Sequence record: NC_028829.1
DNA length: 64,000 nucleotides
Direction: 5' to 3' (one strand)
How positions within the stretch are numbered: the stretch's first letter is position 1; each line of letters opens with the position of its first letter. Below the pieces are notes generated by a model. That model saw nothing but the letters and a program-made list of their open reading frames with translations. It ran no database searches and was not told where the DNA came from. This document shows positions 21,883 to 45,474 of the stretch, in pieces. The position numbers and the translations under genes are program-made.

Positions 21883-21908
21883 AAAAAAGCCCCAATTAAG
21901 GGGCTTTT
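21883..21908 (-). terminator. intrinsic terminator
   Basis: AAAAGCCCC/GGGGCTTTT stem plus T tract. Confidence 0.85.
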
Positions 21909-21909
21909 A

Positions 21910-22203
21910 TTAACGGCTAATTAAATCTTCACCGCTTTTTATCTTTTCAATCTGACCACGATCTAATCGAGAACCGCGTTTAGTTACAAGAGAAGTAAAC
22001 TGCGCGACGCTTGCTGTTTTCACTTCACTTACACTCACACCTGTATACTCAACATAATGAACTGTATCACCTGATACATTCCAATTACCAGAATCATCAG
22101 TTACATCTAACACAACTAGATCGATGTTTCGATTCGGCGTGTTGTATATGAAATTTTTCGATACGCGCATGACCGACTCGTTGAATTCTTTAAAGCTTTT
22201 CAT
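21910..22203 (-). CDS. putative internal head protein (capsid-targeting-like N-terminus)
   Basis: MKSFKEFNE resembles T4 CTS MKTYQEFIAE; own late-like promoter and terminator. Confidence 0.6.
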   Translation of the reverse strand: MKSFKEFNESVMRVSKNFIYNTPNRNIDLVVLDVTDDSGNWNVSGDTVHYVEYTGVSVSEVKTASVAQFTSLVTKRGSRLDRGQIEKIKSGEDLISR

Positions 22204-22232
22204 TGTTGTTCCTTATTTGATGACTTACGTAT

Positions 22233-22240
22233 TACTTATG
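22233..22240 (-). promoter_or_regulatory. late promoter-like CATAAGTA
   Basis: Variant of T4 TATAAATA 30 nt upstream of ATG 22203. Confidence 0.45.
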
Positions 22241-22520
22241 ATAGATCAATTGTCACTGGCGGTTCAAGACCTATACTTCTGTAATACGCATGTTTTATCG
22301 GACGACTGAATTCACGCTCTGCGTCGATAGTCGTTATATCGTTTTCAATACACACTGTGATAATGTGCTCTAACCAACCACCAATCTTTAGATCGGGCCA
22401 ATGTGAATTAGCTAGTAGCACATCAATCATAGATAGACAACGGTCACGCTTCTCAACTGGTAAGTGAACAGACAACAAAGCCGCCCGCTCACATAACGAA
22501 GTTAATGTACATTTGTCCAT
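22236..22520 (-). CDS. hypothetical protein
   Basis: Intact ORF in operon. Confidence 0.75.
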   Translation of the reverse strand: MDKCTLTSLCERAALLSVHLPVEKRDRCLSMIDVLLANSHWPDLKIGGWLEHIITVCIENDITTIDAEREFSRPIKHAYYRSIGLEPPVTIDLS

Positions 22521-22843
22521 TACTTGTAAACAGTCATTGTCACTTGATGCGGGTGTACTTCTGTTACATCGTCAAGTGTCGGCATGTCTAAATCCATGTC
22601 ACTGGCACAGTTATCACCAGTAATGTGATAATCGAATGTCTGGAAGTAACGCTCTACGCCGTCGATGTCAACAGCATGTACGACAGAACGAACGTCATAC
22701 CAACGATGCTCAGAATCGGTTTCTTCTTGGACGACTCGCTTGCTCAAACATTCTACAAATGTTTCATACATCGAATCTGGCTCGTTTGAATAACCATGTT
22801 CGTCGTTGTACGCTTTTACTGCGTCATATAGTGCTTGGCTCAT
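22520..22843 (-). CDS. acidic hypothetical protein
   Basis: Start moved to MSQALY. Confidence 0.75.
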   Translation of the reverse strand: MSQALYDAVKAYNDEHGYSNEPDSMYETFVECLSKRVVQEETDSEHRWYDVRSVVHAVDIDGVERYFQTFDYHITGDNCASDMDLDMPTLDDVTEVHPHQVTMTVYK

Positions 22844-23187
22844 TTTGCCCACCCCATTTTGTATAGTAGTTCGCAAGTTGCTTCAACGTCATTTTCGACA
22901 TCGGCAACCCATTCGAATAGCTTTTCGTTAATATTACATACGGCATACACGTCCATGTAACCGCTCATATACGTACTTTCTTCTTCAAGAACTTTCACGT
23001 ATGATTCGTCGTATTGAACAACTTTACCGTCGGCATCGACTTCAATCGAATACGATTCTTCGGGATCATCTTCAACTAGCTTCATGACATCTAGAAACTT
23101 GTCTAAACACGGGTCTGTCATCGGTATAAAACGATGCCATGTTTCACCTTCGTGATCGTTATATTCTGTATAACGTACGTATTTCAT
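22840..23187 (-). CDS. acidic hypothetical protein
   Basis: Intact ORF in operon. Confidence 0.75.
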   Translation of the reverse strand: MKYVRYTEYNDHEGETWHRFIPMTDPCLDKFLDVMKLVEDDPEESYSIEVDADGKVVQYDESYVKVLEEESTYMSGYMDVYAVCNINEKLFEWVADVENDVEATCELLYKMGWAK

Positions 23188-23486
23188 CCCAACACCCTTT
23201 TCACTTTCAAATATGTTTCGTAATCGGTCTTCTGAATTTGCGCTTCAGAACCGATTACACCTTTAAGACGATAATTTATATTGTCATCGTCTGAATCAAA
23301 ATGCATACGAGTACCACAGTCAATGCATTTCACTTCATTCCAATAACAATCACACGTCGGGTCGTAATTGCCCGTGTTAGACTTGAGTTCATAAGCCACA
23401 CGAGTATGTTGGCAACGACTGCGCTCTTGTTCTAACTTATGTTGAAGCTCGGCAATCTGCGCTTCTAATTCAAATACGCTGTCCAT
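23184..23486 (-). CDS. Cys-containing hypothetical protein (paralog of 24065..24397)
   Basis: ELEAQ...RCQHTRV.Y...EVKCIDC. Confidence 0.75.
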   Translation of the reverse strand: MDSVFELEAQIAELQHKLEQERSRCQHTRVAYELKSNTGNYDPTCDCYWNEVKCIDCGTRMHFDSDDDNINYRLKGVIGSEAQIQKTDYETYLKVKRVLG

Positions 23487-24056
23487 CTAAATCCCCTTTA
23501 GAAAATGCTTACGACACATACTACGGTAATCAGTATCACCGATATGTGTCTGCTCGCCTTCTGTTACGCGCTCACCCTCGATGTACAAGCCGATATGAGT
23601 TGCTTTCTTATGACAACCATCAACTGAACACATTGCTTTGATTTCGCGAATCTCATCGGCATGACACATCAACGCAGCAGACCCCGCAAACAAATTACCC
23701 ATGTAATCATTACGTATGCCATAACAAAGCACTGGTATGTTGTATTGATCAACCAGAGTAGCAAGCTGAAGTACTTGTTTCTCAGTTAGAAACTGACATT
23801 CGTCAACGAAAATCGCAGCAGGAACTAGTTCAAATAACGCATAGTCAATGAAGTCGAAGTCCTCAGAGTACAATACTGCATCATGCTCAAGCCCAATACG
23901 ACTTGAGATCTTACCAGTTCCACCAAAACGATTGTCTTGATAGTAGTTAAAATACCACACAGTAGAACCAGTCTGTTCATAGTTATGAGCAGCTTGTAAT
24001 AGCTGTGCAGATTTGCCCGCGTTCATAGCGGAATAATTGTAGTAAAGTTTTGCCAT
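23487..24056 (-). CDS. tk: thymidine kinase
   Basis: LYYNYSAMNAGKS, ISSRIG, VDECQFL, YGIRNDY, C...C and YRSMCRKH. Confidence 0.96.
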   Translation of the reverse strand: MAKLYYNYSAMNAGKSAQLLQAAHNYEQTGSTVWYFNYYQDNRFGGTGKISSRIGLEHDAVLYSEDFDFIDYALFELVPAAIFVDECQFLTEKQVLQLATLVDQYNIPVLCYGIRNDYMGNLFAGSAALMCHADEIREIKAMCSVDGCHKKATHIGLYIEGERVTEGEQTHIGDTDYRSMCRKHFLKGI

Positions 24057-24064
24057 GTTAGCCC

Positions 24065-24397
24065 TTAATATGGATATGGTGGAACTGGCTCACCGTCAAT
24101 CGCTGCTTTAACTTGCAAGTAGATTTTGTACTTCTCTTCTTCAATACTCAAATCACTACCAATCTCACGTTGCATATGATAGTTTAATATATCAACATGA
24201 GAGTAGAAACGATGTACGGTCTTGCAGTCAATACAACGAACATCACGCCAATTCATACCGCCATCTGAGCCATTCGTATAAGTGACTCTTGTATGACGAC
24301 ATTTATCACGCTCTTCGTCAATCTCTTTCTGAAGAGCTTTCATTTGCGCTTCTAATTCAACTATTCTCATTAGATAATCACCATTGACAACCATCAA
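24065..24397 (-). CDS. Cys-containing hypothetical protein
   Basis: ELEAQ...KCRHTRV.Y...DVRCIDC. Confidence 0.75.
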   Translation of the reverse strand: MMVVNGDYLMRIVELEAQMKALQKEIDEERDKCRHTRVTYTNGSDGGMNWRDVRCIDCKTVHRFYSHVDILNYHMQREIGSDLSIEEEKYKIYLQVKAAIDGEPVPPYPY

Positions 24398-25317
24398 TTA
24401 TCTTCATTTTTCTCATAATCACTTAGTTCATACGGCTTCATGTTCGTATAACCTGTATCTGATTCTTTGAATTTCGTCTGTGGCTGTGCATTAACAACAA
24501 ATGAACCGAACTTCTTCGTTTCAAGCCAGTCGATGATCTCATCTAACCACGTCTCAATACCGAAGTAATCACTCCATACTTGTAGACGACGAAACTTACG
24601 AATCGCATCGGCAACGCTGTCTTCATCTACGTCAGTTAGCTTACACTTAGGGCCAGGTAAATCAACATGTTTAACATCGATGAAATCAGGGTGTGACAAG
24701 CTCTTCATTTCACGCCATTTACCATGTACGTCGCGCATATGACGATCATTGGCATACAGATCAGTTGTAATACGACCAATCGAGTATCTAATACCCTCTT
24801 TGAATTGCTTCTCTGTTACATGACCTTGAGCATGACCCGCAGGTGAGATGAAACGTATGATTTCGAAATCACATGAGAACGGTTGACCATAATCACCTTG
24901 TAATACGAAATTGTGAATATCACAACGACCTGTCATACTGACATTACGACATGCATTCGGCTTTAATGTTCTATTCGTGTAATCTTTTTCTTGAGTGTCA
25001 GAAAGTAAAACTACGTCTTTCCCGTTGACATTGATTACACGCTTTTCGTATAAGTCAGATTGAGCTTCTAACGGAGCGCGTGTCTCTACACCATGCGTGT
25101 CATGTTCATCGAGATAGTCATTTGGTAGATAATCTAAACTCCAACGACCGCAACATGAACCACAAGACGCTGGACATAAAAATCCCTTGCGTATGTTCTC
25201 TTGAATGCGCATGGTCTTAGGTACATATAGATTACCCTTATATCGAAAGGGTGTTTTACTCACCATCGACATATACATGGCAATCTTGTCTACTGAATCA
25301 ACTTTCACGCAATGCAC
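24394..25317 (-). CDS. YkgJ/CxxCxxCC-like cysteine-cluster (Fe-S or Zn) protein
   Basis: CPASCGSCC ... ACRNV...GRCDIH ... PFSC. Confidence 0.65.
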   Translation of the reverse strand: MHCVKVDSVDKIAMYMSMVSKTPFRYKGNLYVPKTMRIQENIRKGFLCPASCGSCCGRWSLDYLPNDYLDEHDTHGVETRAPLEAQSDLYEKRVINVNGKDVVLLSDTQEKDYTNRTLKPNACRNVSMTGRCDIHNFVLQGDYGQPFSCDFEIIRFISPAGHAQGHVTEKQFKEGIRYSIGRITTDLYANDRHMRDVHGKWREMKSLSHPDFIDVKHVDLPGPKCKLTDVDEDSVADAIRKFRRLQVWSDYFGIETWLDEIIDWLETKKFGSFVVNAQPQTKFKESDTGYTNMKPYELSDYEKNEDN

Positions 25318-25618
25318 CTTCTACTACTTCAGTCCAGTGAGCACCACCGTTATAGTGATACGTCTCGAAATGAATATCACCGTTTTCTTGCACGTCAGCG
25401 CGTGCAATATGATATAGGTCTTCGCGCTCGGCTTCAAAAGTGACAGTGTAAGGTTTGTCACAAACCAAAACTAGCCCATAATCGACGTGATTATCCAAGA
25501 GATATTCGACTTTAGAATCGTAATAGCTTGGTAAATCTGTTACGAGTTCTTCAGCTAGTTCTTCAATCGACTTTCTAGTGGGATGCAATACCCCTTTATT
25601 ATATTCCATCTGGCTCAT
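25298..25618 (-). CDS. hypothetical protein
   Basis: GAGGA RBS; ends YNGGAHWTE. Confidence 0.8.
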   Translation of the reverse strand: MSQMEYNKGVLHPTRKSIEELAEELVTDLPSYYDSKVEYLLDNHVDYGLVLVCDKPYTVTFEAEREDLYHIARADVQENGDIHFETYHYNGGAHWTEVVEGALRES

Positions 25619-25766
25619 TGTCTTTCCTCGTTTAGCTTACGACATAACTCATAAGCCCCGTTGTAAGTGAAATGATATGAAACAGTTCTTCGGTCGTAGT
25701 TGTCTGAGAATATAACGACTTTCCATAACAACCCGTATAGAGAAGAACGAACGGCGTACATTTTAT

Positions 25767-25952
25767 TCATCGCTTAAACCCGTGCTCTAACATTGCCCCA
25801 TAACCAGTCCCGTTCTGACCACCATGAAAGAACACGTATAACGGCTTGCTATCATGTTCAGTAATAGCAATTATAGTCACTGGCTGACCGTCTATGTTGT
25901 GATAACGACTAGCAGGAGCAGCAGAGACTTTAACAACGTCACCTACGTTCAT
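25767..25952 (-). CDS. hypothetical protein
   Basis: Intact ORF in operon. Confidence 0.7.
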   Translation of the reverse strand: MNVGDVVKVSAAPASRYHNIDGQPVTIIAITEHDSKPLYVFFHGGQNGTGYGAMLEHGFKR

Positions 25953-26383
25953 AGCTCAACCCCTTGCATAGACAACCACGTTTCAAGCTCACGTTTAGCA
26001 TCGACTAGATTGTTTCTCAGTGCATGAAAATCTTTAGAGTGAACTCGATTGCGCTCGACTGTGTGATAATCACTGTAATCGAACATGGCGTAATCAAACC
26101 CCTCTTTATCAATACAACGCTGTAAGATAGATTTATCTTGAGCTGATAAAGTAAGATCTTGTGTTTCAATAGAGCCGAGACAACGTAACTCGCGAATATC
26201 GTAAGTACTAAAGTCAATAGTACCCCAAGCGTGAACATGACCGAGTAGAATATAACGACCATGTTCTTCTTTGTATAGATCATTCATGTCAGTCATATAC
26301 GCTCGTTTGCCTTCGTTGGCATGGTCGTCTGTCATTTCAATAAGACAGATATCATTTGATGTTTGCCAGAAACGGTAAATCAT
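25949..26383 (-). CDS. hypothetical protein
   Basis: GAGG RBS. Confidence 0.8.
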   Translation of the reverse strand: MIYRFWQTSNDICLIEMTDDHANEGKRAYMTDMNDLYKEEHGRYILLGHVHAWGTIDFSTYDIRELRCLGSIETQDLTLSAQDKSILQRCIDKEGFDYAMFDYSDYHTVERNRVHSKDFHALRNNLVDAKRELETWLSMQGVEL

Positions 26384-26547
26384 GTTAATAACCTCGCTTT
26401 GCTCGTTTCGCTTTAATGGCGCGCTTTACACGACGGGAATATTCAGAGTTGTCATTACTCTTCAGTAGGAAATCCTCGTACGATTCTGAACGCTTGTCTA
26501 AGTCTATTCCCGCGGGAGTGTTCATATTACCATTATACATTTGCTTC

Positions 26548-26754
26548 TCACTTTATTACTTTAAATCGACTAGACGTTTTGTTAATGGTCATGTTTGCAC
26601 GATAACCATTAACGATTTTCTTACCAGCTACACTTATAACTTGCATTACAAATGAATACTTGTCTTTCCGAACCGTCACTGGCGAGACAATTTCATAGTT
26701 GAACGCATCGCCGAGCAAAGTCTCTTCTAAAACACTACCTTTTTTGAGTTTCAT
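26548..26754 (-). CDS. hypothetical protein
   Basis: Start moved to MKLKKG. Confidence 0.65.
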   Translation of the reverse strand: MKLKKGSVLEETLLGDAFNYEIVSPVTVRKDKYSFVMQVISVAGKKIVNGYRANMTINKTSSRFKVIK

Positions 26755-27070
26755 TATCAACCCCATACACGTCTGGGAAGTACGTCTTGTATTCTTCAAA
26801 TTGACATGGTTTATGTTCGCGTAGATATTCACCATGTTCAATAATTGCCTTTTCACTCGACCAGAAATCTTCAATACAACCACCACATTCACACTCAGGG
26901 CATTGAATTTCAGTATAAGGTGGCATTTCCCAGCCGTCGTGATGGTCGTAATCATGAATACAATCAGCAACTGCGAAGTCTTTATGACATACAGTACAGC
27001 GACATTCATCTAATACAGGGCCATCACGCTCTTGTTTGACTCTAGCAAGCAATGATCTTAGATTAATCAT
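26735..27070 (-). CDS. Zn-ribbon hypothetical protein
   Basis: CRCTVC ... CPECECGGC; start moved to MINLRS. Confidence 0.7.
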   Translation of the reverse strand: MINLRSLLARVKQERDGPVLDECRCTVCHKDFAVADCIHDYDHHDGWEMPPYTEIQCPECECGGCIEDFWSSEKAIIEHGEYLREHKPCQFEEYKTYFPDVYGVDNETQKR

Positions 27071-27284
27071 TGTTCTTACGTTTGAAAGCTTTATGAGCTT
27101 CAACGAATGGCCATGTGATTGCTGCTAAAAACGCCCCGAGTATAGTCGCAACAATACCGATAATGACAGCACCTAATAGTACCACCAGCCCGACGAAGAA
27201 TTCAATTATCGACCAGATAACCCCAACAATCGCCATAAACACGACTACGAAAACAGTCGCAACACCTACAATTAAATCTTTCAT
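27063..27284 (-). CDS. small membrane protein
   Basis: Long hydrophobic stretch. Confidence 0.75.
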   Translation of the reverse strand: MKDLIVGVATVFVVVFMAIVGVIWSIIEFFVGLVVLLGAVIIGIVATILGAFLAAITWPFVEAHKAFKRKNND

Positions 27285-27592
27285 TATTCACCCTTTGGTT
27301 TAAAACCGTCTTTACCTTCGATAGTCTGAGCAACCCATATGCTTTCGATATCGTCAAAATCATTTGCGATTTGTAACGGCTCGTTCATCAACGCGATGTC
27401 TTGGCTAATGAGTTGTGAGCGAATTTCACTACTAGTATATGCATCACGAGCTTCGTCCCAATTAATCGATTTTCGACCGTATGACTCTTCGTAGTCCATT
27501 CGATAAACCCAAAACGCAAACGCTCTACCACTTTTATATGAAATAACTAATAAGTGTCGCGTATAGTCTAAGTCTTTCAAATCATCTTTCAT
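27284..27592 (-). CDS. hypothetical protein
   Basis: Intact ORF in operon. Confidence 0.75.
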   Translation of the reverse strand: MKDDLKDLDYTRHLLVISYKSGRAFAFWVYRMDYEESYGRKSINWDEARDAYTSSEIRSQLISQDIALMNEPLQIANDFDDIESIWVAQTIEGKDGFKPKGE

Positions 27593-27831
27593 TTTTTATT
27601 TCCCGTGAAATAGTTGATCGTATTCAGCACACGGTCTCTGATAAAGAATAGCACAAGTGCGAACCAGATTAAACTAAAGAAAGCAATGCACTTATGCGTT
27701 TCGATTGATGTAATCGGGAACTTGTTGTCTAACTTGCCTTTGAGTTTGTACATGGCATAATCACCACCAGCAACATACAGATAAGCACCAAGCGCGACAA
27801 GTAGATAAAACGCTAGAATATTAATGATCAT
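27589..27831 (-). CDS. small membrane protein (paralog of 27828..28064)
   Basis: TM-DNKFPIT-TM. Confidence 0.75.
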   Translation of the reverse strand: MIINILAFYLLVALGAYLYVAGGDYAMYKLKGKLDNKFPITSIETHKCIAFFSLIWFALVLFFIRDRVLNTINYFTGNKK

Positions 27832-28064
27832 TTTTCTCTCATTTGTTCAATGTGACATTTAGTTAGAAGAATCAACAACGGTAACCACAATGCTGCAATG
27901 CCCATGTACATCGTATGAGTTCCGACGTGTGTAATCGGGAACTTGTTGTCTGCATAACACCCGTTTTTGAAGTACAAAAACCAGTCGTGTGCTTCACAGT
28001 AAAGAAAGTACACAAGTGCAATACCGAAATACCACGATAAAATAGTTAGCATAGTGGCTGCCAT
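27828..28064 (-). CDS. small membrane protein
   Basis: TM-DNKFPIT-TM. Confidence 0.75.
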   Translation of the reverse strand: MAATMLTILSWYFGIALVYFLYCEAHDWFLYFKNGCYADNKFPITHVGTHTMYMGIAALWLPLLILLTKCHIEQMREK

Positions 28065-28399
28065 AGTTGTTTCATTGTTTTCTGGTGGACTTTCAAGTAC
28101 TCGACAAAGCGCGGTACTTCGTCTTCAGTAATAGAACGAATGAAGAACGGAGCGAAAATACCTTTACGTTGATGCATAATAAAGATCTCGGCGTAGTACG
28201 TATCAAGCGGCGTTTCGCAGTCTTCAGACAAGTTCGGTTTGACATCCCAACGGAATACTAGATTATAATCAACGTCAGCGTCTTCGAACTCGTCTAAAAA
28301 CTCTGTCATTGTCTCAAATACACCACCAGACTCGTTACTATGGTAATTACTATCAGCACAGTAATACGGATGTTCTACTGCTAGTTCAGCTAAAGTCAT
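28046..28399 (-). CDS. conserved phage hypothetical protein
   Basis: HPYYC...DYNLVFRWDV; start moved to MTLAEL after GAGG. Confidence 0.75.
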   Translation of the reverse strand: MTLAELAVEHPYYCADSNYHSNESGGVFETMTEFLDEFEDADVDYNLVFRWDVKPNLSEDCETPLDTYYAEIFIMHQRKGIFAPFFIRSITEDEVPRFVEYLKVHQKTMKQLWQPLC

Positions 28400-28869
28400 T
28401 TGATACCCTCTATATTGGCGATTATAAATTCTAGCCATTGTACACGATACTCATGCAATTTCGACTTGTCATCCCTTGTAATAAAGCTCAAGAATGCAGA
28501 CAAATGACTTGCAGCTTTTTTGTCTTGAGGCGGAATATCAAGCGAATCTAAGAATGGTACTTTGATTTTATCCAGTTCTTCGTATGTTGTTCTAAGCTCA
28601 TGTGCATTACGCTTGTCATTAAACAAGGTTTCAGCAATCTGGCAACAAGTGTAATCGTTTAACACTCTACTGTCAGTTTTCGATTCAGCGAGTAGATTCT
28701 CAGCAGCCGCTTTGATATGTTCTTGTAACGTCATAGGGAAATTCTCTGTGAATTCTTCTACAGTTGGACCAATGGCGGGATACGAATGCAATTCAGCTAG
28801 TATCTCATCTGGTGTTTTAGAGCTTAGTATATCATCGAGAATACCAAGCCGTTCATCTAGACTAAGCAT
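28396..28869 (-). CDS. paralog family member (YTC...RxxWL)
   Basis: HIKAAAENLL...YTCCQIA...YRVQWLEFI. Confidence 0.8.
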   Translation of the reverse strand: MLSLDERLGILDDILSSKTPDEILAELHSYPAIGPTVEEFTENFPMTLQEHIKAAAENLLAESKTDSRVLNDYTCCQIAETLFNDKRNAHELRTTYEELDKIKVPFLDSLDIPPQDKKAASHLSAFLSFITRDDKSKLHEYRVQWLEFIIANIEGIK

Positions 28870-29284
28870 TTCTACGGTTCTCGTATTCGCTTGGTTGAGT
28901 CAAGATAAACTCTAGCCATTGGCGACGATATTCAGTAAATAACTCAATGTCAATTTTACCATCGTCTTTAATTGCAATATCGTGAATAAACGTACCGCGA
29001 TAATAATCGACGTTTAGGCATGCTTTGAGCTTAGACAGTGCTGCTTCAGACAAGTCGATTTTGCCTTGTAATGCATTGTCATAAACTCGCTTAACAAAAG
29101 GCGCTGCAATCTCGGATAACGTGGTTTTCACGTCAACGTAAGACGAATATTTTTCCAATGGATCTTTTGTAGAACGTACAAGAAACGCAATTTCATTACA
29201 CGTATAACCATACATATCGGTTAAAATATCACCATCTTCTAGCAGTTCAGCAGCGGCTTTTTTGATTTCACTTAAATGTTTCAT
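28862..29284 (-). CDS. paralog family member (YTC...RxxWL)
   Basis: IKKAAAELL...YTCNEIA...YRRQWLEFI. Confidence 0.8.
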   Translation of the reverse strand: MKHLSEIKKAAAELLEDGDILTDMYGYTCNEIAFLVRSTKDPLEKYSSYVDVKTTLSEIAAPFVKRVYDNALQGKIDLSEAALSKLKACLNVDYYRGTFIHDIAIKDDGKIDIELFTEYRRQWLEFILTQPSEYENRRNA

Positions 29285-29661
29285 TACACATTCTCCACGA
29301 TATGTTTCAGCCATGCTTTGCGTGCAGCTACGAAACACTCACTGGCAACGTCTTTACCGCGCATAGAAATCACGTGAATGAAAGCAGACGAATAGAAATT
29401 ATCAGCTACAATAGACTTTAGTTCAGAGCGTGATGACTCTTCTAGATCGAAGCCAAGTGTTTCGACTGGATTACGCAATACCGCATATAAGAACGACTTA
29501 GCGAGTTCACGAATAACTGCTTTAACCTCGTTATGAGTGTAAATGCTACTAGATGAAATATCATCGGCAATGCGATTGCACGTATAGCTATTGATGTTTG
29601 AAGTGATGTCATCTTCAAGTAATTCAGACGCGGCTTGGCGAATGAGTTCGTGTAGATTCAT
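29284..29661 (-). CDS. paralog family member (YTC...RxxWL)
   Basis: IRQAASELL...YTCNRIA...ARKAWLKHI. Confidence 0.8.
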   Translation of the reverse strand: MNLHELIRQAASELLEDDITSNINSYTCNRIADDISSSSIYTHNEVKAVIRELAKSFLYAVLRNPVETLGFDLEESSRSELKSIVADNFYSSAFIHVISMRGKDVASECFVAARKAWLKHIVENV

Positions 29662-29662
29662 T

Positions 29663-30097: not shown

Positions 30098-30100
30098 ATC

Positions 30101-30352
30101 TTATCCCTTGTAAGCTGCTTCAATTTTCTCGATGATTTGACCGTAAGGCAAACCGCTATTGTATAGCTCATTGAACATTTTGTTTACGTTGTTCGCGACT
30201 TCACGCATAACATTAGCTGAAGCAGCAGTCGTTTTGTGACTGATTTTAACACCAGTACGACCGATGAATAGCTTTACTTCGCTCTTATCAGCAGTCAAGA
30301 TTTTAAGCCAAAGTGAATCGTGATTGATTTTGCTGCGTGTGATTAAGTTCAT
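30101..30352 (-). CDS. hypothetical early protein
   Basis: GAGAGAACATTATG start. Confidence 0.8.
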   Translation of the reverse strand: MNLITRSKINHDSLWLKILTADKSEVKLFIGRTGVKISHKTTAASANVMREVANNVNKMFNELYNSGLPYGQIIEKIEAAYKG

Positions 30353-37928: not shown

Positions 37929-37963
37929 ATTGGGCTCCCCATTTTGTCATTGATTGAGATTAG

Positions 37964-37992
37964 ATTATTACATCTATTATTGTTTGTGTCAA
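37964..37992 (-). promoter_or_regulatory. probable promoter of natV
   Basis: TTGACA with TAATAAT at about 17 bp. Confidence 0.5.
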
Positions 37993-37997
37993 ATACT

Positions 37998-38513
37998 TTA
38001 AAACTCTTGACCTGCATCAGAACAAATTGCGTTATTAAGTATTGCCACGGCTTTTGCGACTACACGATCAGTTAAGCCGATCTCAGGGTCGCAGTTTACA
38101 TAGTTATGACGTTGCCATAACAACATATCAGTGTCATCATCTAAGATGACATAGCTTCGAAAGTCGTATCGCTTACCAAGCAACTCTTCATTGTCTTGAA
38201 TCCATTTAAGAATCTCATTACCACGAAAAGCCCATGAGTATTGATGGTCGAGCATATCTGTTTTGCCGATACATTCACCATTAACACCCATATCATTAAG
38301 CACTGTATTGATCTCATCGATACTAAGACCACAACGCCACACACTTGTAAGAACAATGCGTGCGTCAGTTCTTTTAATGAGATCATTTAAACGGTCGACA
38401 CATCGCGGCGAATAAATCCCTTGATACTCGCCATTCAATAGCACGTCCATGTGCTCATCGGCTTCTAAAGCGTTGTTTAGAACGCCGTCTATGTCCAAGA
38501 ATATAACTTTCAT
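37998..38513 (-). CDS. HAD phosphatase, Swiss-army-knife RNA-repair-like family
   Basis: MKVIFLDIDGVLN, IVLTSVWR, RGNEI..W, YVILDDD. Confidence 0.8.
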   Translation of the reverse strand: MKVIFLDIDGVLNNALEADEHMDVLLNGEYQGIYSPRCVDRLNDLIKRTDARIVLTSVWRCGLSIDEINTVLNDMGVNGECIGKTDMLDHQYSWAFRGNEILKWIQDNEELLGKRYDFRSYVILDDDTDMLLWQRHNYVNCDPEIGLTDRVVAKAVAILNNAICSDAGQEF

Positions 38514-38517
38514 TATG

Positions 38518-38979
38518 TTACCACTTGCATAATTCACCGAGTGCGTCATATGCATCATTCATGCCGTGTAGACTAAAATGATACGAGTATGACACACCGT
38601 GCCCGTTGTTTACAACATATTCGAGCATATTTCCTGTTTTGAGCGTATCGATAACATCATCACTATTACCAAGATAAGTCGTGACAGATGATTGTTGTTG
38701 TAACTGATTACTCTCGACTCGCACGTATGGGTTCCCATCTAGTGAATACCAGATTTCGTCCGGTTTTGCAGCGGTCAGGTATGCTCTCGTTTCATACAAC
38801 GTGATTGCTTTATCACAGTCAATTGTGAGCACAGCAAGACGATTGACTGAGTTCGTGCTTGCAGTGTGTATTGGCTCATGTGTGCGAACATCAACACGAT
38901 GAACAGTCATCCAATCATCGTGTACGTGTGCGTTCGCAATCAATGGCATTATTGCCAAGCTTAACAATGCGAACTTCAT
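38518..38979 (-). CDS. secreted/periplasmic hypothetical protein
   Basis: Signal peptide MKFALLSLAIMPLIANA; C-terminal FSLHGMNDAY..L...C. Confidence 0.75.
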   Translation of the reverse strand: MKFALLSLAIMPLIANAHVHDDWMTVHRVDVRTHEPIHTASTNSVNRLAVLTIDCDKAITLYETRAYLTAAKPDEIWYSLDGNPYVRVESNQLQQQSSVTTYLGNSDDVIDTLKTGNMLEYVVNNGHGVSYSYHFSLHGMNDAYDALGELCKW

Positions 38980-39030
38980 ATTGTGCTTCCTTGTGCTTGT
39001 TGCACACGTGCAAATATGGCGCTGTTAGTT

Positions 39031-39792
39031 TTACACTGTATGCATACCACTGCGTCGCAATGAAGACAGTTCATGGGAGCGCAGTGAGCCACTTTTCTTG
39101 AGCTTTGTCTCTTTAGGTTGAACGATTTTCTTTGCTTCTTCAGTGATGATTTCGACTAATTCAATATCGGTATAATGAGTATCGAGTAGTCGACCTTCTT
39201 TACTCACGGGTTGAATACCAACCGAGATTGTCCCGTTTGCTTGATTGAAAATGGCAGTGACTAAGCCAGTTGCGCCAGTTGCCATGCATCGAGCTTTTTG
39301 CAGCAATTCCACTTTAAGCTCATCACGCTCACGCTTTTGACGATTGTTGATGATCTTATCGTGAATCGAGTGACCTGTTTGCTTACAGCTAATGACCCGC
39401 GCAGATGCATAAATATTCGTTTCATGCTCTGCGTATGGCTTAATCAAAAGCACATTAGGTGCTGCGTTCACTGAGTATTGAATTTCAGTTACGATACCTT
39501 TCGCTTCTGAAACTGTGTCTTCAACTTCATCACCAAGACGAATTGGCATTGTAGTATTTGTCTCTGCGAAAATAGCTTCATACTCTTCAACTCGATTAGA
39601 ATTGACGATTTCGACTAATTTCGAGCTAAAAACATGAGTTTTCACTTCATTTTTAGCGTCTTTTGCTCGAACTTCAAGCAATTCACACCCTGCGATGCAC
39701 TGTGTGATACCGATTACCGTACCTTCGATACCAGTTGTGATTGATTTAACAAGCATGCCGAAGCGATGCCCAGATGTAGTTGCAATACTCAT
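39031..39792 (-). CDS. hypothetical protein with three tandem ~75-aa repeats
   Basis: Three copies of (D/S/C)..(T/S)G(I/A).G.V..I motif. Confidence 0.75.
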   Translation of the reverse strand: MSIATTSGHRFGMLVKSITTGIEGTVIGITQCIAGCELLEVRAKDAKNEVKTHVFSSKLVEIVNSNRVEEYEAIFAETNTTMPIRLGDEVEDTVSEAKGIVTEIQYSVNAAPNVLLIKPYAEHETNIYASARVISCKQTGHSIHDKIINNRQKRERDELKVELLQKARCMATGATGLVTAIFNQANGTISVGIQPVSKEGRLLDTHYTDIELVEIITEEAKKIVQPKETKLKKSGSLRSHELSSLRRSGMHTV

Positions 39793-40032
39793 AATATATC
39801 ACTCTTATTTATTGGAATTTAACACATTATTCACATGATTTCATATGAATTTGCTATTAATCTCGCTTTTGATTCAAATTGTAGATTGTTTTACCGTCTA
39901 CGTTTGCTAATGCTTCTGCATATGCCGTACGAGCAACAGACTTACAATCGTTGAACATTCTACCAGACGGCGTGCATAACCATGCACGCGCTTTGTCTAA
40001 GTATTCTTGAACTTCTTCAGCAGTTGCTAAGA

Positions 40033-40356
40033 TCATAGAGCCAATTCCTCTAGTTCTTCAGCAGAACCTGCGCCAACGTCCATGACTTTCTCTAATGCAA
40101 TCCAACGAGTGCCATTGTAGTATTGACAGTTATTGTTCCACATGTTGTGACGCCACAAATCCCATGGTACAGATTGGTCGATTACAGCAGTCCATGTACA
40201 CGATGCAATTGCAGGTACACGAGTATAACTGACATAACCAAGTGCTAATACAGCTACAAGAACAGCAGCAGTGATACGAGGGTGTGATTTAGCTTCTTGA
40301 GCGAGAATCACAGTGTTGTCAAGCCAGTTAGGCATTTTCGGCATTTTGAATTTCAT
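40033..40356 (-). CDS. membrane-anchored hypothetical protein
   Basis: TM segment; first gene after promoter 40393-40421. Confidence 0.75.
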   Translation of the reverse strand: MKFKMPKMPNWLDNTVILAQEAKSHPRITAAVLVAVLALGYVSYTRVPAIASCTWTAVIDQSVPWDLWRHNMWNNNCQYYNGTRWIALEKVMDVGAGSAEELEELAL

Positions 40357-40392
40357 GATTTTGTTCTCTTGTTTCGTTAGGCGTTGAGTGAC

Positions 40393-40421
40393 ATATTACT
40401 GCCACTCACACGTTTTGTCAA
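40393..40421 (-). promoter_or_regulatory. early promoter
   Basis: TTGACA-17bp-TAATAT. Confidence 0.7.
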
Positions 40422-40434
40422 CTACTTTTTGAAA

Positions 40435-41700
40435 TTAATTGTACAATGCCCAATCTGTTGGTCGAGTTAGTGCAACATAAGCAAGTTGCTGAACAATCTC
40501 TGGCTCGGCGTATCCCATGTCTTGAGTGTAGATACACACACCTTTAACAGTCGTACCTTGTGACTTGTGAGTTGTTGATGCACCAAGAGACTTAGTTTCA
40601 ATCATCTGCTCTTTCAAGCCCCAGAAAGCACGCCAGTAGCGTTTAGTATTACCACGCATCGACTTGTAAGTACCAGCAGCAACCATCAAGTAACGCGCAA
40701 AGCGTTCTTTCTGTAGGTCATCCCACAGAACAGTGAACTCATACACATTACCATCGTCTTTCTCAACAGTTAGCACAGCAACATCAAACGATTCGTTGTC
40801 TACTTTTGGTAACATACCATCGATTGTTTTCTGACGAACATCAAGAATCTTAACGATTTCACCATTGTCAATGACACAAACAGGGTACTTCCCGTTTGAC
40901 TGCATAACTGGCATTTGTGTTACAAGATACTCATTCGGGATAAATGGTTCGCTCGTGTTGTAAATGTGCTCACGAATAATACCATTGAACGTATCAACAC
41001 AATCGTTTGTGTAAGCAAGAATACGATAGTCAAGCAAGTCTTCAGGTGTGTTGATTTTACTCAAGTAAGTGTCTAGCATTTTATTCACGTTCGGAACGTG
41101 CAAAACGCCTTGACGCAGCTCTTTTGACCAGTTAGTGCGTAGCCATTCACCTTGACGTACTTCAGTTGCGACTTGAATCAACGGGTTGTCTTTTGCTTGT
41201 CGTACAACTTCAGTCATTTCATAAGTGTTGAACTTAGTGAACATCGGTGAGATAATACCAGGCTCATGTTTCACTGGTTGAAGCTGATACTTATCACCAA
41301 CACCTAGAATGCGACACTTGCGTGGCATTGTTTTACCCATGATGTCGTATAGCTCATTGTCGATCATACTTGCTTCTTCGACCACAAGCACATCAATTTC
41401 GTCTAGACCTTCAACATCACCAGCTTGCTTGAAGTGCTTCTGATCTTCATACGTGTCTGGGTGAATTTTCAGTAGACTGTGAATCGTTGATACATCACGA
41501 CCTGTCATTTTGTGTAGCACGTTCTTTGCTTGGTGAGTTGGTGCTACCATTGCTACGTTCTTGCCTTTTGCGTCAAGTGCCGCGAGAATAGACTTCATTA
41601 AGAATGTCTTACCAGAACCCGCGGGACCAGAAATAGTCATATGCCCATCAGAGTCGAGAAACGCATTCATTGCACCTTGTTGGCAATTAGTTAAACCCAC
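40435..41700 (-). CDS. dda: Dda-like SF1B DNA helicase
   Basis: GPAGSGKT, APTHQA, TIHSLL, EEASMI, GDKYQL, EVVRQ, HKSQGTT, YVALTR; GTG start after GAGGA preferred. Confidence 0.95.
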   Translation of the reverse strand: MGLTNCQQGAMNAFLDSDGHMTISGPAGSGKTFLMKSILAALDAKGKNVAMVAPTHQAKNVLHKMTGRDVSTIHSLLKIHPDTYEDQKHFKQAGDVEGLDEIDVLVVEEASMIDNELYDIMGKTMPRKCRILGVGDKYQLQPVKHEPGIISPMFTKFNTYEMTEVVRQAKDNPLIQVATEVRQGEWLRTNWSKELRQGVLHVPNVNKMLDTYLSKINTPEDLLDYRILAYTNDCVDTFNGIIREHIYNTSEPFIPNEYLVTQMPVMQSNGKYPVCVIDNGEIVKILDVRQKTIDGMLPKVDNESFDVAVLTVEKDDGNVYEFTVLWDDLQKERFARYLMVAAGTYKSMRGNTKRYWRAFWGLKEQMIETKSLGASTTHKSQGTTVKGVCIYTQDMGYAEPEIVQQLAYVALTRPTDWALYN

Positions 41701-41710
41701 TATCTTTTCC

Positions 41711-42085
41711 TCATCTATATTTCCAATTGATCGTATGCACTTTGATTGAACGCTCTCGACAAATGTCAATCATGTTCTGAGTGCCGCGACCGCCTTTGAA
41801 TGCCAAACATATGTCTGGCTTGAGATCAGCCATGTCGGAGTTGCGTTTAAAACCCGCAGAATCGCCATATTTGTCCCACTCAGCTTCGCACGTGATTAAA
41901 TCAACATCGATGTGCGCTTGATTCGCCCAATCTTGCGCAAGTCGATCAGCACCAAGTGCGCCGCCTTCTATAATAGTCATTCGCCCTATATAGAAGCTAT
42001 TGTATAGCTTATCTAACGCAGCATAAACAAGTTTTCTATCCCTGAACTTACGACCACCACAGACGAGTACTCTCGGTGACATCAT
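41711..42085 (-). CDS. SLOG/DUF2493 (YspA-like) protein
   Basis: VLVCGGR, IIEGGALGADRLA..WA, AG..RN..M, AF.GGRGT.NMI. Confidence 0.8.
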   Translation of the reverse strand: MMSPRVLVCGGRKFRDRKLVYAALDKLYNSFYIGRMTIIEGGALGADRLAQDWANQAHIDVDLITCEAEWDKYGDSAGFKRNSDMADLKPDICLAFKGGRGTQNMIDICRERSIKVHTINWKYR

Positions 42086-42537
42086 TGGTCAATTAACCAA
42101 CCATATAGACAGAACTCAAGTAGTTGATGAGGCATGAGCGATGTGCTATCACCAAAATGTCCGTCGAAATGAAACTCAAGTTCTTTACCAGTCTCTTGGT
42201 TGAATATGTTTGTTGTGGTATCATGAACCCCACCGCAGCATTCACAATGCCAGTGATGTTCTTCTTGAGTCACATCGACGTGAGGGAATAGGTCTGTGAT
42301 TAACTCGAACTCGTCTGGTTCTAGTTCGCGTGTTTTAAGCAGTGTTTCGATTATATTACGAGCGTCGTATTTTTCGCGTACGACAGTGCAGCCAATTGAA
42401 GGGATTTCAACCATAGCTGTCTTGTACATTTCACAGTTGTAGTTTTGATCGATGTATGATTCCCATGTTGCAGATAGCAAAAGGTCATCATTGAACATGA
42501 ATTGAAGGGAGTTTTGGTCTTGAATTAGTGTAATCAT
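42082..42537 (-). CDS. hypothetical protein
   Basis: GAGAGAAATATATG start; HCECCG. Confidence 0.8.
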   Translation of the reverse strand: MITLIQDQNSLQFMFNDDLLLSATWESYIDQNYNCEMYKTAMVEIPSIGCTVVREKYDARNIIETLLKTRELEPDEFELITDLFPHVDVTQEEHHWHCECCGGVHDTTTNIFNQETGKELEFHFDGHFGDSTSLMPHQLLEFCLYGWLIDQ

Positions 42538-42551
42538 ATATTTCTCTCAAT

Positions 42552-42574
42552 AAAAAAGCGCCCGTAGGCGCTTT
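42552..42574 (-). terminator. intrinsic terminator
   Basis: AAAGCGCC/GGCGCTTT stem plus T6. Confidence 0.85.
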
Positions 42575-42579
42575 GTGTT

Positions 42580-42831
42580 TTACGGTAAACGTAAGTCTTT
42601 TGCAGTGATGTAGATGTCTGTGTCAGGGTCGTAGTACATACCCTCACGTGCATCGTAGTAATAAACTTTACCATTCAGGTCAGTATATGGACCCTCTAGA
42701 CCTGAATTAGACAAGTCTGGGTAACGGCTATCATCTACTTTACGATGTTTGACAACACGCTCGTGAAACTCTTGTTCAGTTTCTTGCAGTTTGACTTCAC
42801 CTTTTTTGAAAAAATCGTTAAAACTTTTCAT
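42580..42831 (-). CDS. putative virion internal protein, CTS-like N-terminus, Tyr-rich C-terminus
   Basis: MKSFNDFF...KLQE; GLEGPY..NGKVYYYD..EGMYYDP; late promoter 26 nt upstream. Confidence 0.65.
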   Translation of the reverse strand: MKSFNDFFKKGEVKLQETEQEFHERVVKHRKVDDSRYPDLSNSGLEGPYTDLNGKVYYYDAREGMYYDPDTDIYITAKDLRLP

Positions 42832-42856
42832 GTTAAACCTCTTTATTTGTTTAACG

Positions 42857-42864
42857 TATTTATA
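42857..42864 (-). promoter_or_regulatory. T4-type late promoter
   Basis: Exact TATAAATA upstream of GAGG RBS and ATG 42831. Confidence 0.8.
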
Positions 42865-42865
42865 A

Positions 42866-43879
42866 TCAATTGTAACTATATACTGAAGGGAAGTAGAATT
42901 CGTCAAGCCAGTCATCATACCACTCGTAGAAATCATTAACCAATTCAGGTGTGTGATTCGGAAGTGACGTTGTATCTTTTGCATTTTCTAGCACTTCAAG
43001 ACGTTCTTGCAGCACTTCAGACACATATTCCCACTTGTACTTACCTTGTTTCACGTCACGATAGAACGCTGCGTTCTTCAAAGGGAATTCCAACTTACCT
43101 ACTGTTAGTATATCGATTGCTTGATCGATTACACGCATGGCATGTGATATCGCTTTCCAATCTGAACCACTTGCAGCACGCGCTTGATATGCACGAGCAC
43201 CATATTTGCTCATCATCTTCTCAAGACGACCCGCAGCTTCTTCAAACGTTATCTCAAGACCGAATACTTTCTCAAGCACACTGAATGCAGGGTCTTTCAA
43301 ATCGCTCGCGTCTTTAGTTTTAGGCCCATGATACCACTGAAAACGCACGTGAGCGTCTTCTGCACACAGTTCCCATAGTTGTTTGCACAACTCAGGGCTT
43401 GAACCCAACTTCGCTTTAGAATCGACGTTGTGCGTCTCTACAGCACGGGCGAATTGCATAAGGCTGTTTAGTCGCGTACCTTTGATGCCGTACTTCTGTG
43501 CTTGATTGAGCGCGTAACCAGTCATTGCTTTAACGTTTGATGTCAAATACGTACTTGTTAACTCACGACACATAGCAGAGAATGCAGGGTTGCAGTCATC
43601 TGGGTTCTGTAGTGCATTAAATGCCAATTCAATTGCATACGACTGACCTGCAAGAAAGTCACGCATGAACACTTGAACTGGTATATATTCAAAGTCTTCA
43701 TCGTCTGCACCGTTCTTCTCAAACGATTTGCCAGTCGTGTGTACTGAGTTCTTTATTGCAACACCGCGCAACAGTTTACGTATTTCAGGTTGAAAGACAG
43801 CTTTGTAGTCTGTATCTGACTCTGGCGTGTCTGTGCCATAGAGTTTCGAGCCGAATAGACTCGTGAATAGTACATTCAT
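42866..43879 (-). CDS. DNA-pol-beta superfamily nucleotidyltransferase (T4 NrdC.11/RlaP-like)
   Basis: FGSKLYGTDTPESDTDYKAVF (GS..x.D.D), DWKAISHAMR. Confidence 0.8.
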   Translation of the reverse strand: MNVLFTSLFGSKLYGTDTPESDTDYKAVFQPEIRKLLRGVAIKNSVHTTGKSFEKNGADDEDFEYIPVQVFMRDFLAGQSYAIELAFNALQNPDDCNPAFSAMCRELTSTYLTSNVKAMTGYALNQAQKYGIKGTRLNSLMQFARAVETHNVDSKAKLGSSPELCKQLWELCAEDAHVRFQWYHGPKTKDASDLKDPAFSVLEKVFGLEITFEEAAGRLEKMMSKYGARAYQARAASGSDWKAISHAMRVIDQAIDILTVGKLEFPLKNAAFYRDVKQGKYKWEYVSEVLQERLEVLENAKDTTSLPNHTPELVNDFYEWYDDWLDEFYFPSVYSYN

Positions 43880-44151
43880 TGTACACTCTCCCGCATAGCG
43901 ATCATTGCGGTGTAGTTCATTACACTCACGTGATCATTATCTTCAAGTGCTTTATCGCGCAACTCATAGAGATAGTCGATAGAGCACACATTAGGGTCGA
44001 ACCAACCATGACGACCTTTCTTGCGTGCATCAGCAAGTTTTCTAGCCATTTCGTGACTAGAAGCAATGATCAATTGCTTATCAGCCCACTCTTCGTCTGG
44101 TTCAATTGATGGGTCAATAGCTAAATTCATGCTTATTTGAAAGAAGTTCAT
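43876..44151 (-). CDS. conserved phage hypothetical protein
   Basis: KLADARKKGRHGW...DHVSVMNY. Confidence 0.7.
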   Translation of the reverse strand: MNFFQISMNLAIDPSIEPDEEWADKQLIIASSHEMARKLADARKKGRHGWFDPNVCSIDYLYELRDKALEDNDHVSVMNYTAMIAMRESVQ

Positions 44152-44153
44152 AA

Positions 44154-44618
44154 TTACCCCAGTGTCAATGTATTCATCATTTGTGTTTTATAGTTATCAC
44201 CTAGACCGCAACTGCGTGCAGATTGAACACCGATGTAGATGCGCTTGTTGAATGGTTTCACGATTGACTCTAGAATTTCAACGATGTCGTGACCTAGCAT
44301 AGGTTGCACGTGCTCGATGAAGATGTGTTCACGATCTTGAGTACATGCAAATGAAACTGCCTCAATGAGTTTTTCAAGATTCAGTCCACCACATACAACC
44401 AATGCACCAACACCAATTTTATTAGCCATATTAGCGTGATGTGTTTCTGTAACGATCATTGTACAGTTGTCGATGCCACGTTGCATCATCATACCCAATA
44501 GCATAGTGTTTTTACCACTTGCAGGTGAGCCTAGAACAACTGTGCTGTACTCGCCATTTAAAATACTCAGCTTAGAAACAGTAGTGTTCGCAGCGCGTAG
44601 AATGTCTTTTGGTGTCAT
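44154..44618 (-). CDS. P-loop-containing hypothetical protein
   Basis: GSPASGKNT Walker-A-like; start moved to MTPKDI. Confidence 0.6.
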   Translation of the reverse strand: MTPKDILRAANTTVSKLSILNGEYSTVVLGSPASGKNTMLLGMMMQRGIDNCTMIVTETHHANMANKIGVGALVVCGGLNLEKLIEAVSFACTQDREHIFIEHVQPMLGHDIVEILESIVKPFNKRIYIGVQSARSCGLGDNYKTQMMNTLTLG

Positions 44619-44670
44619 AATATAAATCTCTTTTTGTTGGATTATTGAACGTTTAATCAGAATATGCCTT

Positions 44671-44699
44671 ATGATAAGCATTTTTTACACTTTAGTCAA
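44671..44699 (-). promoter_or_regulatory. early promoter
   Basis: TTGACT-17bp-TATCAT. Confidence 0.7.
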
Positions 44700-44751
44700 C
44701 AATTATTTTGTCTTTTTTATGAGAAAATTGTAAATCAAGTAGTGTTGTAGC

Positions 44752-44759
44752 ACTAAATA
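44752..44759 (+). promoter_or_regulatory. late promoter-like ACTAAATA
   Basis: Variant of TATAAATA upstream of the structured leader and + strand gene. Confidence 0.45.
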
Positions 44760-44786
44760 TATCATACACAATATTTTATTCAGTTT

Positions 44787-44860
44787 CGAGGGTCGTGACT
44801 ATGTATCGCATTGGTCACTGCGAGTATTGGTTCCAACTATAGTCGCTTCCCTCGTTTTTT
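44787..44860 (+). ncRNA. structured leader or small RNA (long stem with internal branches, then T6)
   Basis: CGAGGG/CCCTCG plus GTGACTAT/ATAGTCGC stems enclosing TCGCA/TGCGA hairpin; followed by TTTTTT. Confidence 0.45.
44801..44842 (+). CDS. possible leader peptide MYRIGHCEYWFQL
   Basis: GAGGG RBS 8 nt before ATG; stop lies in 3' arm of the stem. Confidence 0.3.
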   Translation: MYRIGHCEYWFQL

Positions 44861-44883
44861 ATTACTGACAACAAAGGAATACC

Positions 44884-45444
44884 GTGATGGAACTTAAAAC
44901 ATTTGATGAATATAAAGAAACAGAGCTTAAAGAAGCTACAATAAAGCAATGGGCTGGTCGTTCTGCATTAGCTGGTGCATCTCTCGGTGCTGCATTTGGC
45001 TTCATGACCGCAGCAGCGGGTGCGACAGCAACAGGTGGTTTGGCAGTCGCTGTACCACTTGCAACATGGGGTGCAATTAGTCTCGGTATTCATGGTCTTA
45101 TTGGTGGTGCGTTATTTGCAGGCGGTCAAGCACGCAAAGACTACAGCGAACTCAAAAAGACTATGAAGAAAATCGAGAAGTATCGCTCACTGAAACAAGA
45201 CGATATCACTGAGAAGAAAGTAGCAGCATTTGAAAAAGACTTAGAGCGTTCGTTGTTCTTAGTTCGTAAGCTTCGCACAAGTCTCAACAGTGACATTGAT
45301 ATTGCAACAGCGAAAGGCGTATTTCGTAGCGACATCAAGCAATCTGATCAATATCTTCAAGGTCTTGAGAAGATGGAAGCAGAGCTGATAAAGATTGAAA
45401 AGGCTACTAAACGTGCTAAAAAAGCCGCTAAGAAGTCAAAATAA
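44884..45444 (+). CDS. putative internal virion protein with glycine-zipper hydrophobic segment
   Basis: AAGGA RBS; MELKTFDEYKE..LKE CTS-like; Gly/Ala-rich ~55-aa hydrophobic core; Lys-rich tail. Confidence 0.75.
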   Translation: MMELKTFDEYKETELKEATIKQWAGRSALAGASLGAAFGFMTAAAGATATGGLAVAVPLATWGAISLGIHGLIGGALFAGGQARKDYSELKKTMKKIEKYRSLKQDDITEKKVAAFEKDLERSLFLVRKLRTSLNSDIDIATAKGVFRSDIKQSDQYLQGLEKMEAELIKIEKATKRAKKAAKKSK

Positions 45445-45445
45445 C

Positions 45446-45474
45446 AAAAAAGGGAGCAATTAGCTCCCTTTTTT
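45446..45474. terminator. bidirectional terminator between convergent genes
   Basis: A6-GGGAGC-AATTA-GCTCCC-T6. Confidence 0.9.

Follow-up and report, generated by a model that had tools for sequence, protein, structure and literature searches.

Three small genes of Vibrio phage ValKK3, ORF56, ORF109 and ORF112, raise the question of whether their products travel inside the phage head. The genes lie in a window of 64,000 nucleotides that is identical to bases 1-64000 of the ValKK3 genome (NC_028829/KP671755; 248 kb; KVP40 group of Schizotequatrovirus, Straboviridae). An earlier reading of this window, made from the letters alone and referred to here as the sequence-only reading, had picked out three open reading frames (ORFs), and these match ORF56, ORF109 and ORF112, each annotated in NC_028829 as a hypothetical protein. 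All three begin with residues that recall the capsid-targeting sequence (CTS) of the T4 internal proteins (IPs), the textbook route for loading a head with proteins that are delivered alongside the DNA. The anti-restriction protein IPI of T4 is an example of what such cargo does. On balance, we favor the view that all three proteins carry a T4-type CTS, with ORF109 and ORF112 being trimmed head cargo and ORF56 an accessory candidate. Taken one by one, packaging in the head is likely for ORF109, is favored with less assurance for ORF112, and comes close to an even call for ORF56, leaning slightly against.

To compare the leaders with those of T4, we read the latter from NC_000866, where ipII and ipIII begin with MKTYQEFIAE/A and ipI with MKTFKEFTSTTTPVSTITE/A (a slash marks the cut). 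This comparison bears out the N-terminal likeness claimed in the sequence-only reading. In T4, the first 10 residues of IPIII are sufficient for packaging, residues 4 and 7 direct targeting, residues 8 and 10 direct processing, and targeting persists when processing is impaired; the prohead protease gp21 cleaves after L/I-x-E and removes a propeptide of 10-19 residues (PMC9026906, a review of T4 work). ORF56 (MKSFKEFNE) and ORF109 (MKSFNDFFKKGEVKLQE) have aromatic residues at the T4 targeting positions, F4 and F7. The leader of ORF112 (MELKTFDEYKETELKE) has F6 and Y9, with the same spacing as the T4 pair, displaced by two extra residues (KTFDEY). The cleavage motif reads L-Q-E17 in ORF109 and L-K-E16/A in ORF112; ORF56 has F-N-E9 instead. 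Copying of a DNA block was considered as an origin of these leaders and rejected: the 17 of 24 bases that ORF56 and ORF109 have in common agree with selection acting on the protein rather than with a duplicated stretch of DNA.

If the leaders are address tags, their motif is expected at protein starts. Across all six-frame ORFs of at least 40 codons in the whole genome, K[TS][FY]x[ED][FYW] has eight matches, all within 6 codons of a start codon, which is ATG for seven of the eight. Since an ATG lies that close at only 12% of positions, this restriction to N-termini has P ~3e-6, or ~1e-3 without the three seed ORFs (computed by hand from the same rates). Looser inspection found at least 11 more ValKK3 genes with similar leaders, nearly all of which lie 20-40 nucleotides behind NNTAAATA. 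The one that starts at 99853 encodes a homolog of Alt with a 9-residue leader (F4...L7-N8-E9), and T4 Alt is a known packaged gp21 substrate. Another, at 227763, encodes 369 amino acids with a weak, sub-threshold match to a PARP domain (E 1.4e-5). The machinery that would read such leaders is encoded as well. A gp21-type prohead protease (PF03420, 153823-154362, E 2e-99) adjoins the scaffold and capsid protein genes, and the scaffold is of the gp22 type (PF25623 T4_CASP, E 5e-71). The ValKK3 capsid protein carries an L-N-E/A site, which we take to correspond to the T4 gp23 cut site.

Late expression is suggested by the sequences upstream. Exact TATAAATA, the octamer of T4-family late (gp55) promoters, occurs 14 times in the ValKK3 genome against ~28 copies expected from base composition, almost always 10-56 nucleotides ahead of a start codon; the genes for the capsid protein, scaffold and sheath are among those it precedes. 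Elsewhere in the genome the octamer seems to be avoided. A CTAAATA form, NCTAAATA, precedes the tail tube, fibre and other late genes. CTAAATA is the late-promoter consensus of Aeromonas phage Aeh1, and the -13 position of KVP40 late promoters is loose (PMC1524935, PMC2988020). The T4 ip genes sit among early genes near tk, so such a position is normal for genes of this kind. None of them has TATAAATA within 70 nucleotides upstream, and early-only expression would therefore not refute packaging.

The evidence is most complete for ORF109, which is found in 49 phage records at 65-100% identity. Its neighborhood (nrdC.11 - ORF109 - DUF2493 - dda) is syntenic, its terminator is kept at orthologous loci, and its putative TATAAATA promoter is kept in KVP40, 6E35.1a, F86 and 1.081.O. 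Across 10 relatives, F4 of the leader is invariant and L15, Q16 and E17 nearly so. In a structure model (predicted local distance difference test, pLDDT, 71), the leader is disordered through residue 18, residues 19-36 form a helix, and a Tyr-rich sheet of four strands is modeled with confidence. The predicted cut coincides with the boundary between disorder and helix. Cleavage there would leave an acidic mature part of 66 amino acids (7.8 kDa, isoelectric point, pI, 4.8). A distant metagenomic relative of 82 amino acids, P0010, has a canonical, shorter leader (…TFREFLTE/G, ending L-T-E); it lacks the helix of residues 19-36, keeps the Tyr-rich C-terminal sheet and adds a C-terminal extension. 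An OCRE domain was considered for ORF109 and rejected, at 23.6 bits against a cut-off of 24.7 and with no backing from the fold search. As a separate observation, a gene of Vibrio phage D479 (locus positions 3746-4018, plus strand) that overlaps the stop of the ORF109 ortholog starts with MKTFAQFLTE/G, a near-perfect T4-type leader that is lost in the record through a start call at the internal Met12. Two tandem leader genes are thus present in D479, the ORF109 ortholog and the gene that overlaps it.

ORF112 is found in 44 phage records at 41-100% identity, and the CTAAATA of its putative promoter is invariant in five genomes. Among six relatives down to 43% identity, leader residues M1, K4, T5, F6, E8, L14, E16, A17, T18 and I19 are invariant, and positions 2, 9-13 and 15 vary. 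This is the pattern expected of a targeting motif followed by a cleavage site. The mature part would comprise 169 amino acids (18 kDa, basic, pI 10), with a Gly/Ala-rich, membrane-like hydrophobic hairpin at about residues 23-80, then a helical, charged stretch of coiled-coil character and a tail rich in Lys. Between 20 and 47 kb, 66 of the 67 annotated features are on the minus strand, and ORF112 is the sole plus-strand gene; in T4, it is only the late transcripts that run in both directions (PMC2988020). The 5′ untranslated region (UTR) of ORF112 contains a structured element of ~75 nucleotides that is better conserved across five phages than the protein itself, with 19 base pairs, three of which show compensatory changes, and an invariant GGTCACTGCGAGTATTGGT core. 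An Rfam scan of the element gave no family match. Its U-tract is not kept in nt-1 or 6E35.1a, and we therefore assign it to the 5′ UTR rather than interpreting it as a terminator. The gene convergent to ORF112, ORF113 (45473-45964, minus strand), codes for a protein with a lipoprotein-type signal (…LTLAAC) whose C-terminal half is extremely rich in Lys.

Particles of the sister phage 6E35.1a have been analyzed by tandem mass spectrometry, and 94 of its 444 proteins are listed (PMC12028318, Tables S4 and S8). The ORF109 ortholog VP6E351A_0192 (PHROG 13298; 86.6% identical) is present with 6 and 13 spectra and the ORF112 ortholog VP6E351A_0188 (PHROG 14713; 66% identical) with 7 and 21. The Alt ortholog, 0095, is abundant (122 and 233 spectra), and other leader-protein orthologs in the particles are 0094 with its paralog 0154, 0357 and, weakly, 0377. 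Ten leader proteins were tested against 6E35.1a, seven orthologs were found and six were looked up in the proteome tables; all six are in the particle proteome, against a background of 94/444 (21%), which is unlikely to be chance. The ratio of nonsynonymous to synonymous substitutions (dN/dS) is 0.11 for ORF109 and 0.01 for ORF112 (PMC12028318, Table S8). The sequence-only reading had offered the three proteins as candidates for injected anti-defence or host-takeover roles. The low dN/dS values of these two core genes indicate purifying selection and suit a conserved function in the head or at entry more than they suit an arms-race inhibitor such as T4 IPI. Given their conservation across the genus, a basic function of this sort is probable for ORF109 and ORF112; of the three, it is the strain-specific ORF56 alone whose profile is that of an IPI-like inhibitor. 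Scans of Pfam, PHROG and the ESM Atlas assigned no function to any of the three proteins, each of which falls in a separate small PHROG family, and the family scan recognized no enzymatic domain in them.

The case of ORF56 is different in most respects. The gene is limited to the ValKK3/VH7D species group, where all 10 records are 100% identical. Searches that covered 5.8 billion clusters and 1.84 billion representatives yielded no credible relative, and a word search found none at all. Five weak matches from an exhaustive phmmer search, each spread over four to eight separate stretches, were rejected as homologs; the strongest owes its score to a 20-residue repeat and two others are known multi-repeat proteins. 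The ORF56 model is a small alpha/beta domain (pLDDT 69.6; predicted template modeling score, pTM, 0.65), and neither it nor the ORF109 model gave a convincing match in the PDB (Foldseek E > 0.2, VIA-align Z ≤4.4). In KVP40, which lacks ORF56, ORF57 runs directly into the same stem-loop that follows ORF56 in ValKK3, and XZ1 lacks both ORF56 and ORF57 (compared with window positions 21900-22520), with an identical boundary at that stem-loop. Since the stem-loop is present in two phages without ORF56, it is older than the gene, and the gaps in KVP40 and XZ1 end exactly there, which marks it as a putative recombination hotspot. The proposed promoter, CATAAGTA, puts a G in the TAAATA core common to 11 other leader genes. 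The 5′ UTR shares 11 consecutive identical bases with that of the late gene at 70972, with the promoter core lost. It is the leader that hints, weakly, at capsid targeting of ORF56.

These results refine the sequence-only reading, which had described three monocistronic late units, each with its own late promoter and terminator. For ORF109 and ORF112, monocistronic units are plausible, and an exact octamer in the one and an invariant CTAAATA in the other agree with late promoters of their own; for ORF56, the unit is unsupported and the TAAATA core is broken. The hairpins downstream of all three genes do fold in computation. That of ORF109 is its own, that of ORF112 is shared with the convergent ORF113, and that of ORF56 was there before the gene. 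The further proposal, capsid targeting, has good support in the case of ORF109 and reasonable support in that of ORF112 (conserved leaders, L/I-x-E, late-type promoters, gp21 and gp22, and orthologs in 6E35.1a particles), and for ORF56 it comes down to the leader. The coordinates of the features are collected in the table. Within the same region, a conserved P-loop ORF with a GSPASGKNT motif (44154-44618, minus strand; orthologs KVP40.0151 and 6E35.1a p0026) is absent from the NC_028829 annotation.

Table. Positions of the three leader genes, their signals and further leader genes in ValKK3 (aa, amino acids; nt, nucleotides)
Feature	Position	Strand	Remarks
Early promoter TTGCGT-17-TATTAT for ORF55	21803..21831	-	with the stem-loop below, a PeSL-type composite element
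Stem-loop terminator after ORF56	21883..21908	-	-14.8 kcal/mol
ORF56	21910..22203	-	97 aa; leader MKSFKEFNE
CATAAGTA, proposed late promoter of ORF56	22233..22240	-	overlaps ORF57 TAA stop; unsupported
Intrinsic terminator of ORF109	42549..42574	-	-13.7 kcal/mol, z -5.0
ORF109	42580..42831	-	83 aa; predicted propeptide residues 1-17, ending L-Q-E
ORF109 leader codons 1-17	42781..42831	-	F4, F7; cleavage motif L15-Q16-E17
Predicted late promoter TATAAATA	42857..42864	-	exact; 25 nt upstream of ORF109 ATG
ACTAAATA, Aeh1-type late promoter variant	44752..44759	+	127 nt upstream of ORF112
Structured 5′ UTR element of ORF112	44787..44860	+	outer stem around two hairpins
ORF112	44887..45444	+	185 aa; predicted propeptide residues 1-16, ending L-K-E/A
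ORF112 leader codons 1-16	44887..44934	+	K4-T5-F6-x-E8-[YF]9, then L14-x-E16/A17-T18-I19
Bidirectional terminator of ORF112 and convergent ORF113	45443..45477		-17.2 kcal/mol, z -5.3
Further CTS-like leader genes (starts)	70972, 99853, 146215, 197547, 201182, 207042	+	
Further CTS-like leader genes (starts)	75527, 102398, 208195, 227763	-	
Remnant with CTS-like leader (start)	147739	+	39 codons

Several observations weigh against capsid targeting of these proteins. BLASTP similarity to IPI, IPII and IPIII ends at the leader (best E 0.016), as the sequence-only reading had judged by eye, and the mature parts have no homology to the T4 internal proteins in this search. None of the RNA runs searched contains the locus. 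The particle data come from 6E35.1a and not from ValKK3 and derive from particles that were only precipitated with polyethylene glycol (PEG). The same list holds spanins, PnuC, NAMPT, dUTPase and ligase at similar counts, so detection is suggestive only, and weakest for the membrane-like ORF112. For ORF56, no L/I-x-E was found in the sequence, CATAAGTA was rejected as a late promoter because its core is broken and it overlaps the ORF57 stop, and no phage with a proteome, 6E35.1a included, has an ortholog. One might then regard the leaders as chance or translation-favored N-termini (ATG AAA...) with no targeting role, in which case none of the three proteins would be packaged; genes of AT-rich phages often begin with MK, and the proteome preparation was crude. 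However, the confinement of the motif to N-termini (P ~3e-6), the conservation of the leaders at the protein level and not the DNA level, the L/I-x-E site kept in relatives of ORF109 and ORF112, and six of six orthologs in a particle proteome that covers 21% of the genes make this explanation improbable.

For ORF112, the main rival is a late inner-membrane protein (a holin, antiholin, superinfection-exclusion protein or similar) that reached the particle preparation with co-precipitated membrane debris. Its 55-residue Gly/Ala-rich hydrophobic stretch, charged basic C-terminus and predicted late expression would suit such a protein, it matches holin and LapA families weakly (E 0.03), spanins and PnuC were in the same PEG preparation, and the ortholog lies ~1 kb from rIIB in 6E35.1a and F86. 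A search of the genome for a T-type holin (PF11031) found none, a weak point since the controls found nothing either. However, with Kyte-Doolittle values of 1.1-1.45 over 19-residue windows, the stretch is only marginally hydrophobic for a stable transmembrane helix. The N-terminal motif and L-x-E/ATI are invariant while their flanks vary, and the motif is restricted to N-termini genome-wide. In a holin test the sole holin-family match, PF07332 (E 0.031), fell below the cut-off and there was no adjacent endolysin, and the 6E35.1a curators give the lysis role to other genes. We consider a contaminating membrane protein unlikely. A stronger challenge concerns ORF56, which may simply belong to the tk-region operon as an early or middle accessory gene, with a product that is not packaged and a leader that is a relic of its source cassette. 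It begins 32 nucleotides after ORF57 with no terminator in between, a weak sigma-70-like site overlaps the broken CATAAGTA, F-N-E stands where L/I-x-E is expected, and the bases shared with the late-gene UTR at 70972 would fit such a relic. Yet F4 and F7 are the T4 targeting determinants, six of the first seven residues are as in T4 ipI, the ValKK3 Alt homolog has a 9-residue leader built like that of ORF56, the T4 ip genes likewise lack TATAAATA within 70 nucleotides, and T4 targeting survives impaired processing (PMC9026906). We rate the unpackaged accessory gene as a real possibility that falls somewhat short of even.

We favor head cargo. Our preferred reading of ORF109 and ORF112 is as new families of cargo within a system already known, the T4-type CTS/gp21 system, and not as a new system; ORF56 is possibly a third cargo, recently acquired and with weaker credentials. 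Scaffold binding, cleavage, location in the head, ejection and the host function of the cargo are steps that we infer. As core genes of the KVP40 group that are probably transcribed late, ORF109 and ORF112 would be made during prohead assembly, when, by analogy with T4, the leader aromatics three residues apart would bind the gp22 scaffolding core. The gp21-type protease would then cut after L-Q-E17 in ORF109 and L-K-E16 in ORF112, and the mature acidic ORF109 and basic ORF112 would remain inside the head and exit with the DNA at infection. We hypothesize that ORF56 was acquired recently by insertion just upstream of the terminator/early-promoter (PeSL-type) element, is probably expressed by read-through from the upstream tk-region operon and may be packaged, perhaps untrimmed. 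We also entertain, as a speculative and unlikely extension, that ORF112 is gp21-trimmed cargo with a glycine-zipper-like, weakly hydrophobic hairpin that enters the inner membrane of the host at ejection. Such a protein would be soluble inside the head and, once ejected, could assist the entry of DNA or change the membrane of the cell just infected. It would be shared throughout the KVP40 group and made behind a structured 5′ UTR that is itself conserved. We know of no membrane-inserting class of T4-type head cargo.

What this adds is that at least a dozen unrelated proteins of KVP40-type vibriophages, the three studied here included, bear the same address tag. The leader set is a concrete, testable list of delivered proteins in broad-host-range phages that are used in aquaculture phage therapy, and its strain-specific member ORF56 is a candidate for effects on host range or against defences. 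The leaders matter for annotation as well, since the start of such a gene is sometimes called at an internal Met, as in D479.

Among known systems, the boundary of ORF56 invites comparison with PeSLs, cassette-exchange hotspots in the hyperplastic regions of T4-like phages for which the nt-1/KVP40 promoter consensus is TTGYVH-N17-TAWWAT (Comeau et al. 2014, PMC4122927). The notion of such hotspots goes back to the polymorphic T4 IP locus (Repoila et al. 1994, cited in PMC4122927). As in PeSL shuffling, the ORF56 indel boundary falls exactly at the stem-loop, followed by TTGCGT-17-TATTAT, which fits the consensus. Unlike the stated A3-4G3/C3T3-4, the stem here is AAAAGCCCC/GGGGCTTTT, and the insertion is flanked by no second PeSL, so shuffling is a mechanism that we can only infer. 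For the hydrophobic ORF112, a possible analogy lies elsewhere, although T4-type phages are not known to need a DNA-conduit protein. The ejection proteins of P22 (gp7, gp16 and gp20) and of SPN3US-type giant phages are head-internal proteins that leave with the DNA (PMC8402733, PMC7411985), and ORF112 is likened to them by role alone.

The closest likeness is to T4 IPI, IPII and IPIII. Both sets have a leader of 9-19 residues with aromatics at 4 and 7 that ends x-x-E, both are encoded by small genes that lie dispersed among the early genes around tk and have regulatory signals of their own, and ValKK3 has the gp21 and gp22 homologs. They differ in that the mature domains of the three ValKK3 proteins are unrelated to those of T4; mature T4 IPs all compute as basic (pI 9.0-9.7), in contrast to the acidic ORF109 and to ORF112 with its membrane-like hairpin; and T4 IPs are hypervariable, whereas ORF109 and ORF112 are conserved core genes. 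The leader of ORF112 is displaced by two residues and ORF56 has no L/I at P3, the third residue before the cut. Alt, a packaged ADP-ribosyltransferase in T4, differs as a large enzyme with a known activity, whereas ORF56, ORF109 and ORF112 have no recognizable enzymatic domain. T4 Alt is packaged cargo with a short cleaved leader, as its ValKK3 homolog at 99853 and our candidates are predicted to be, and the leader of ValKK3 Alt ends L-N-E at residue 9, matching the ORF56 leader in length and build.

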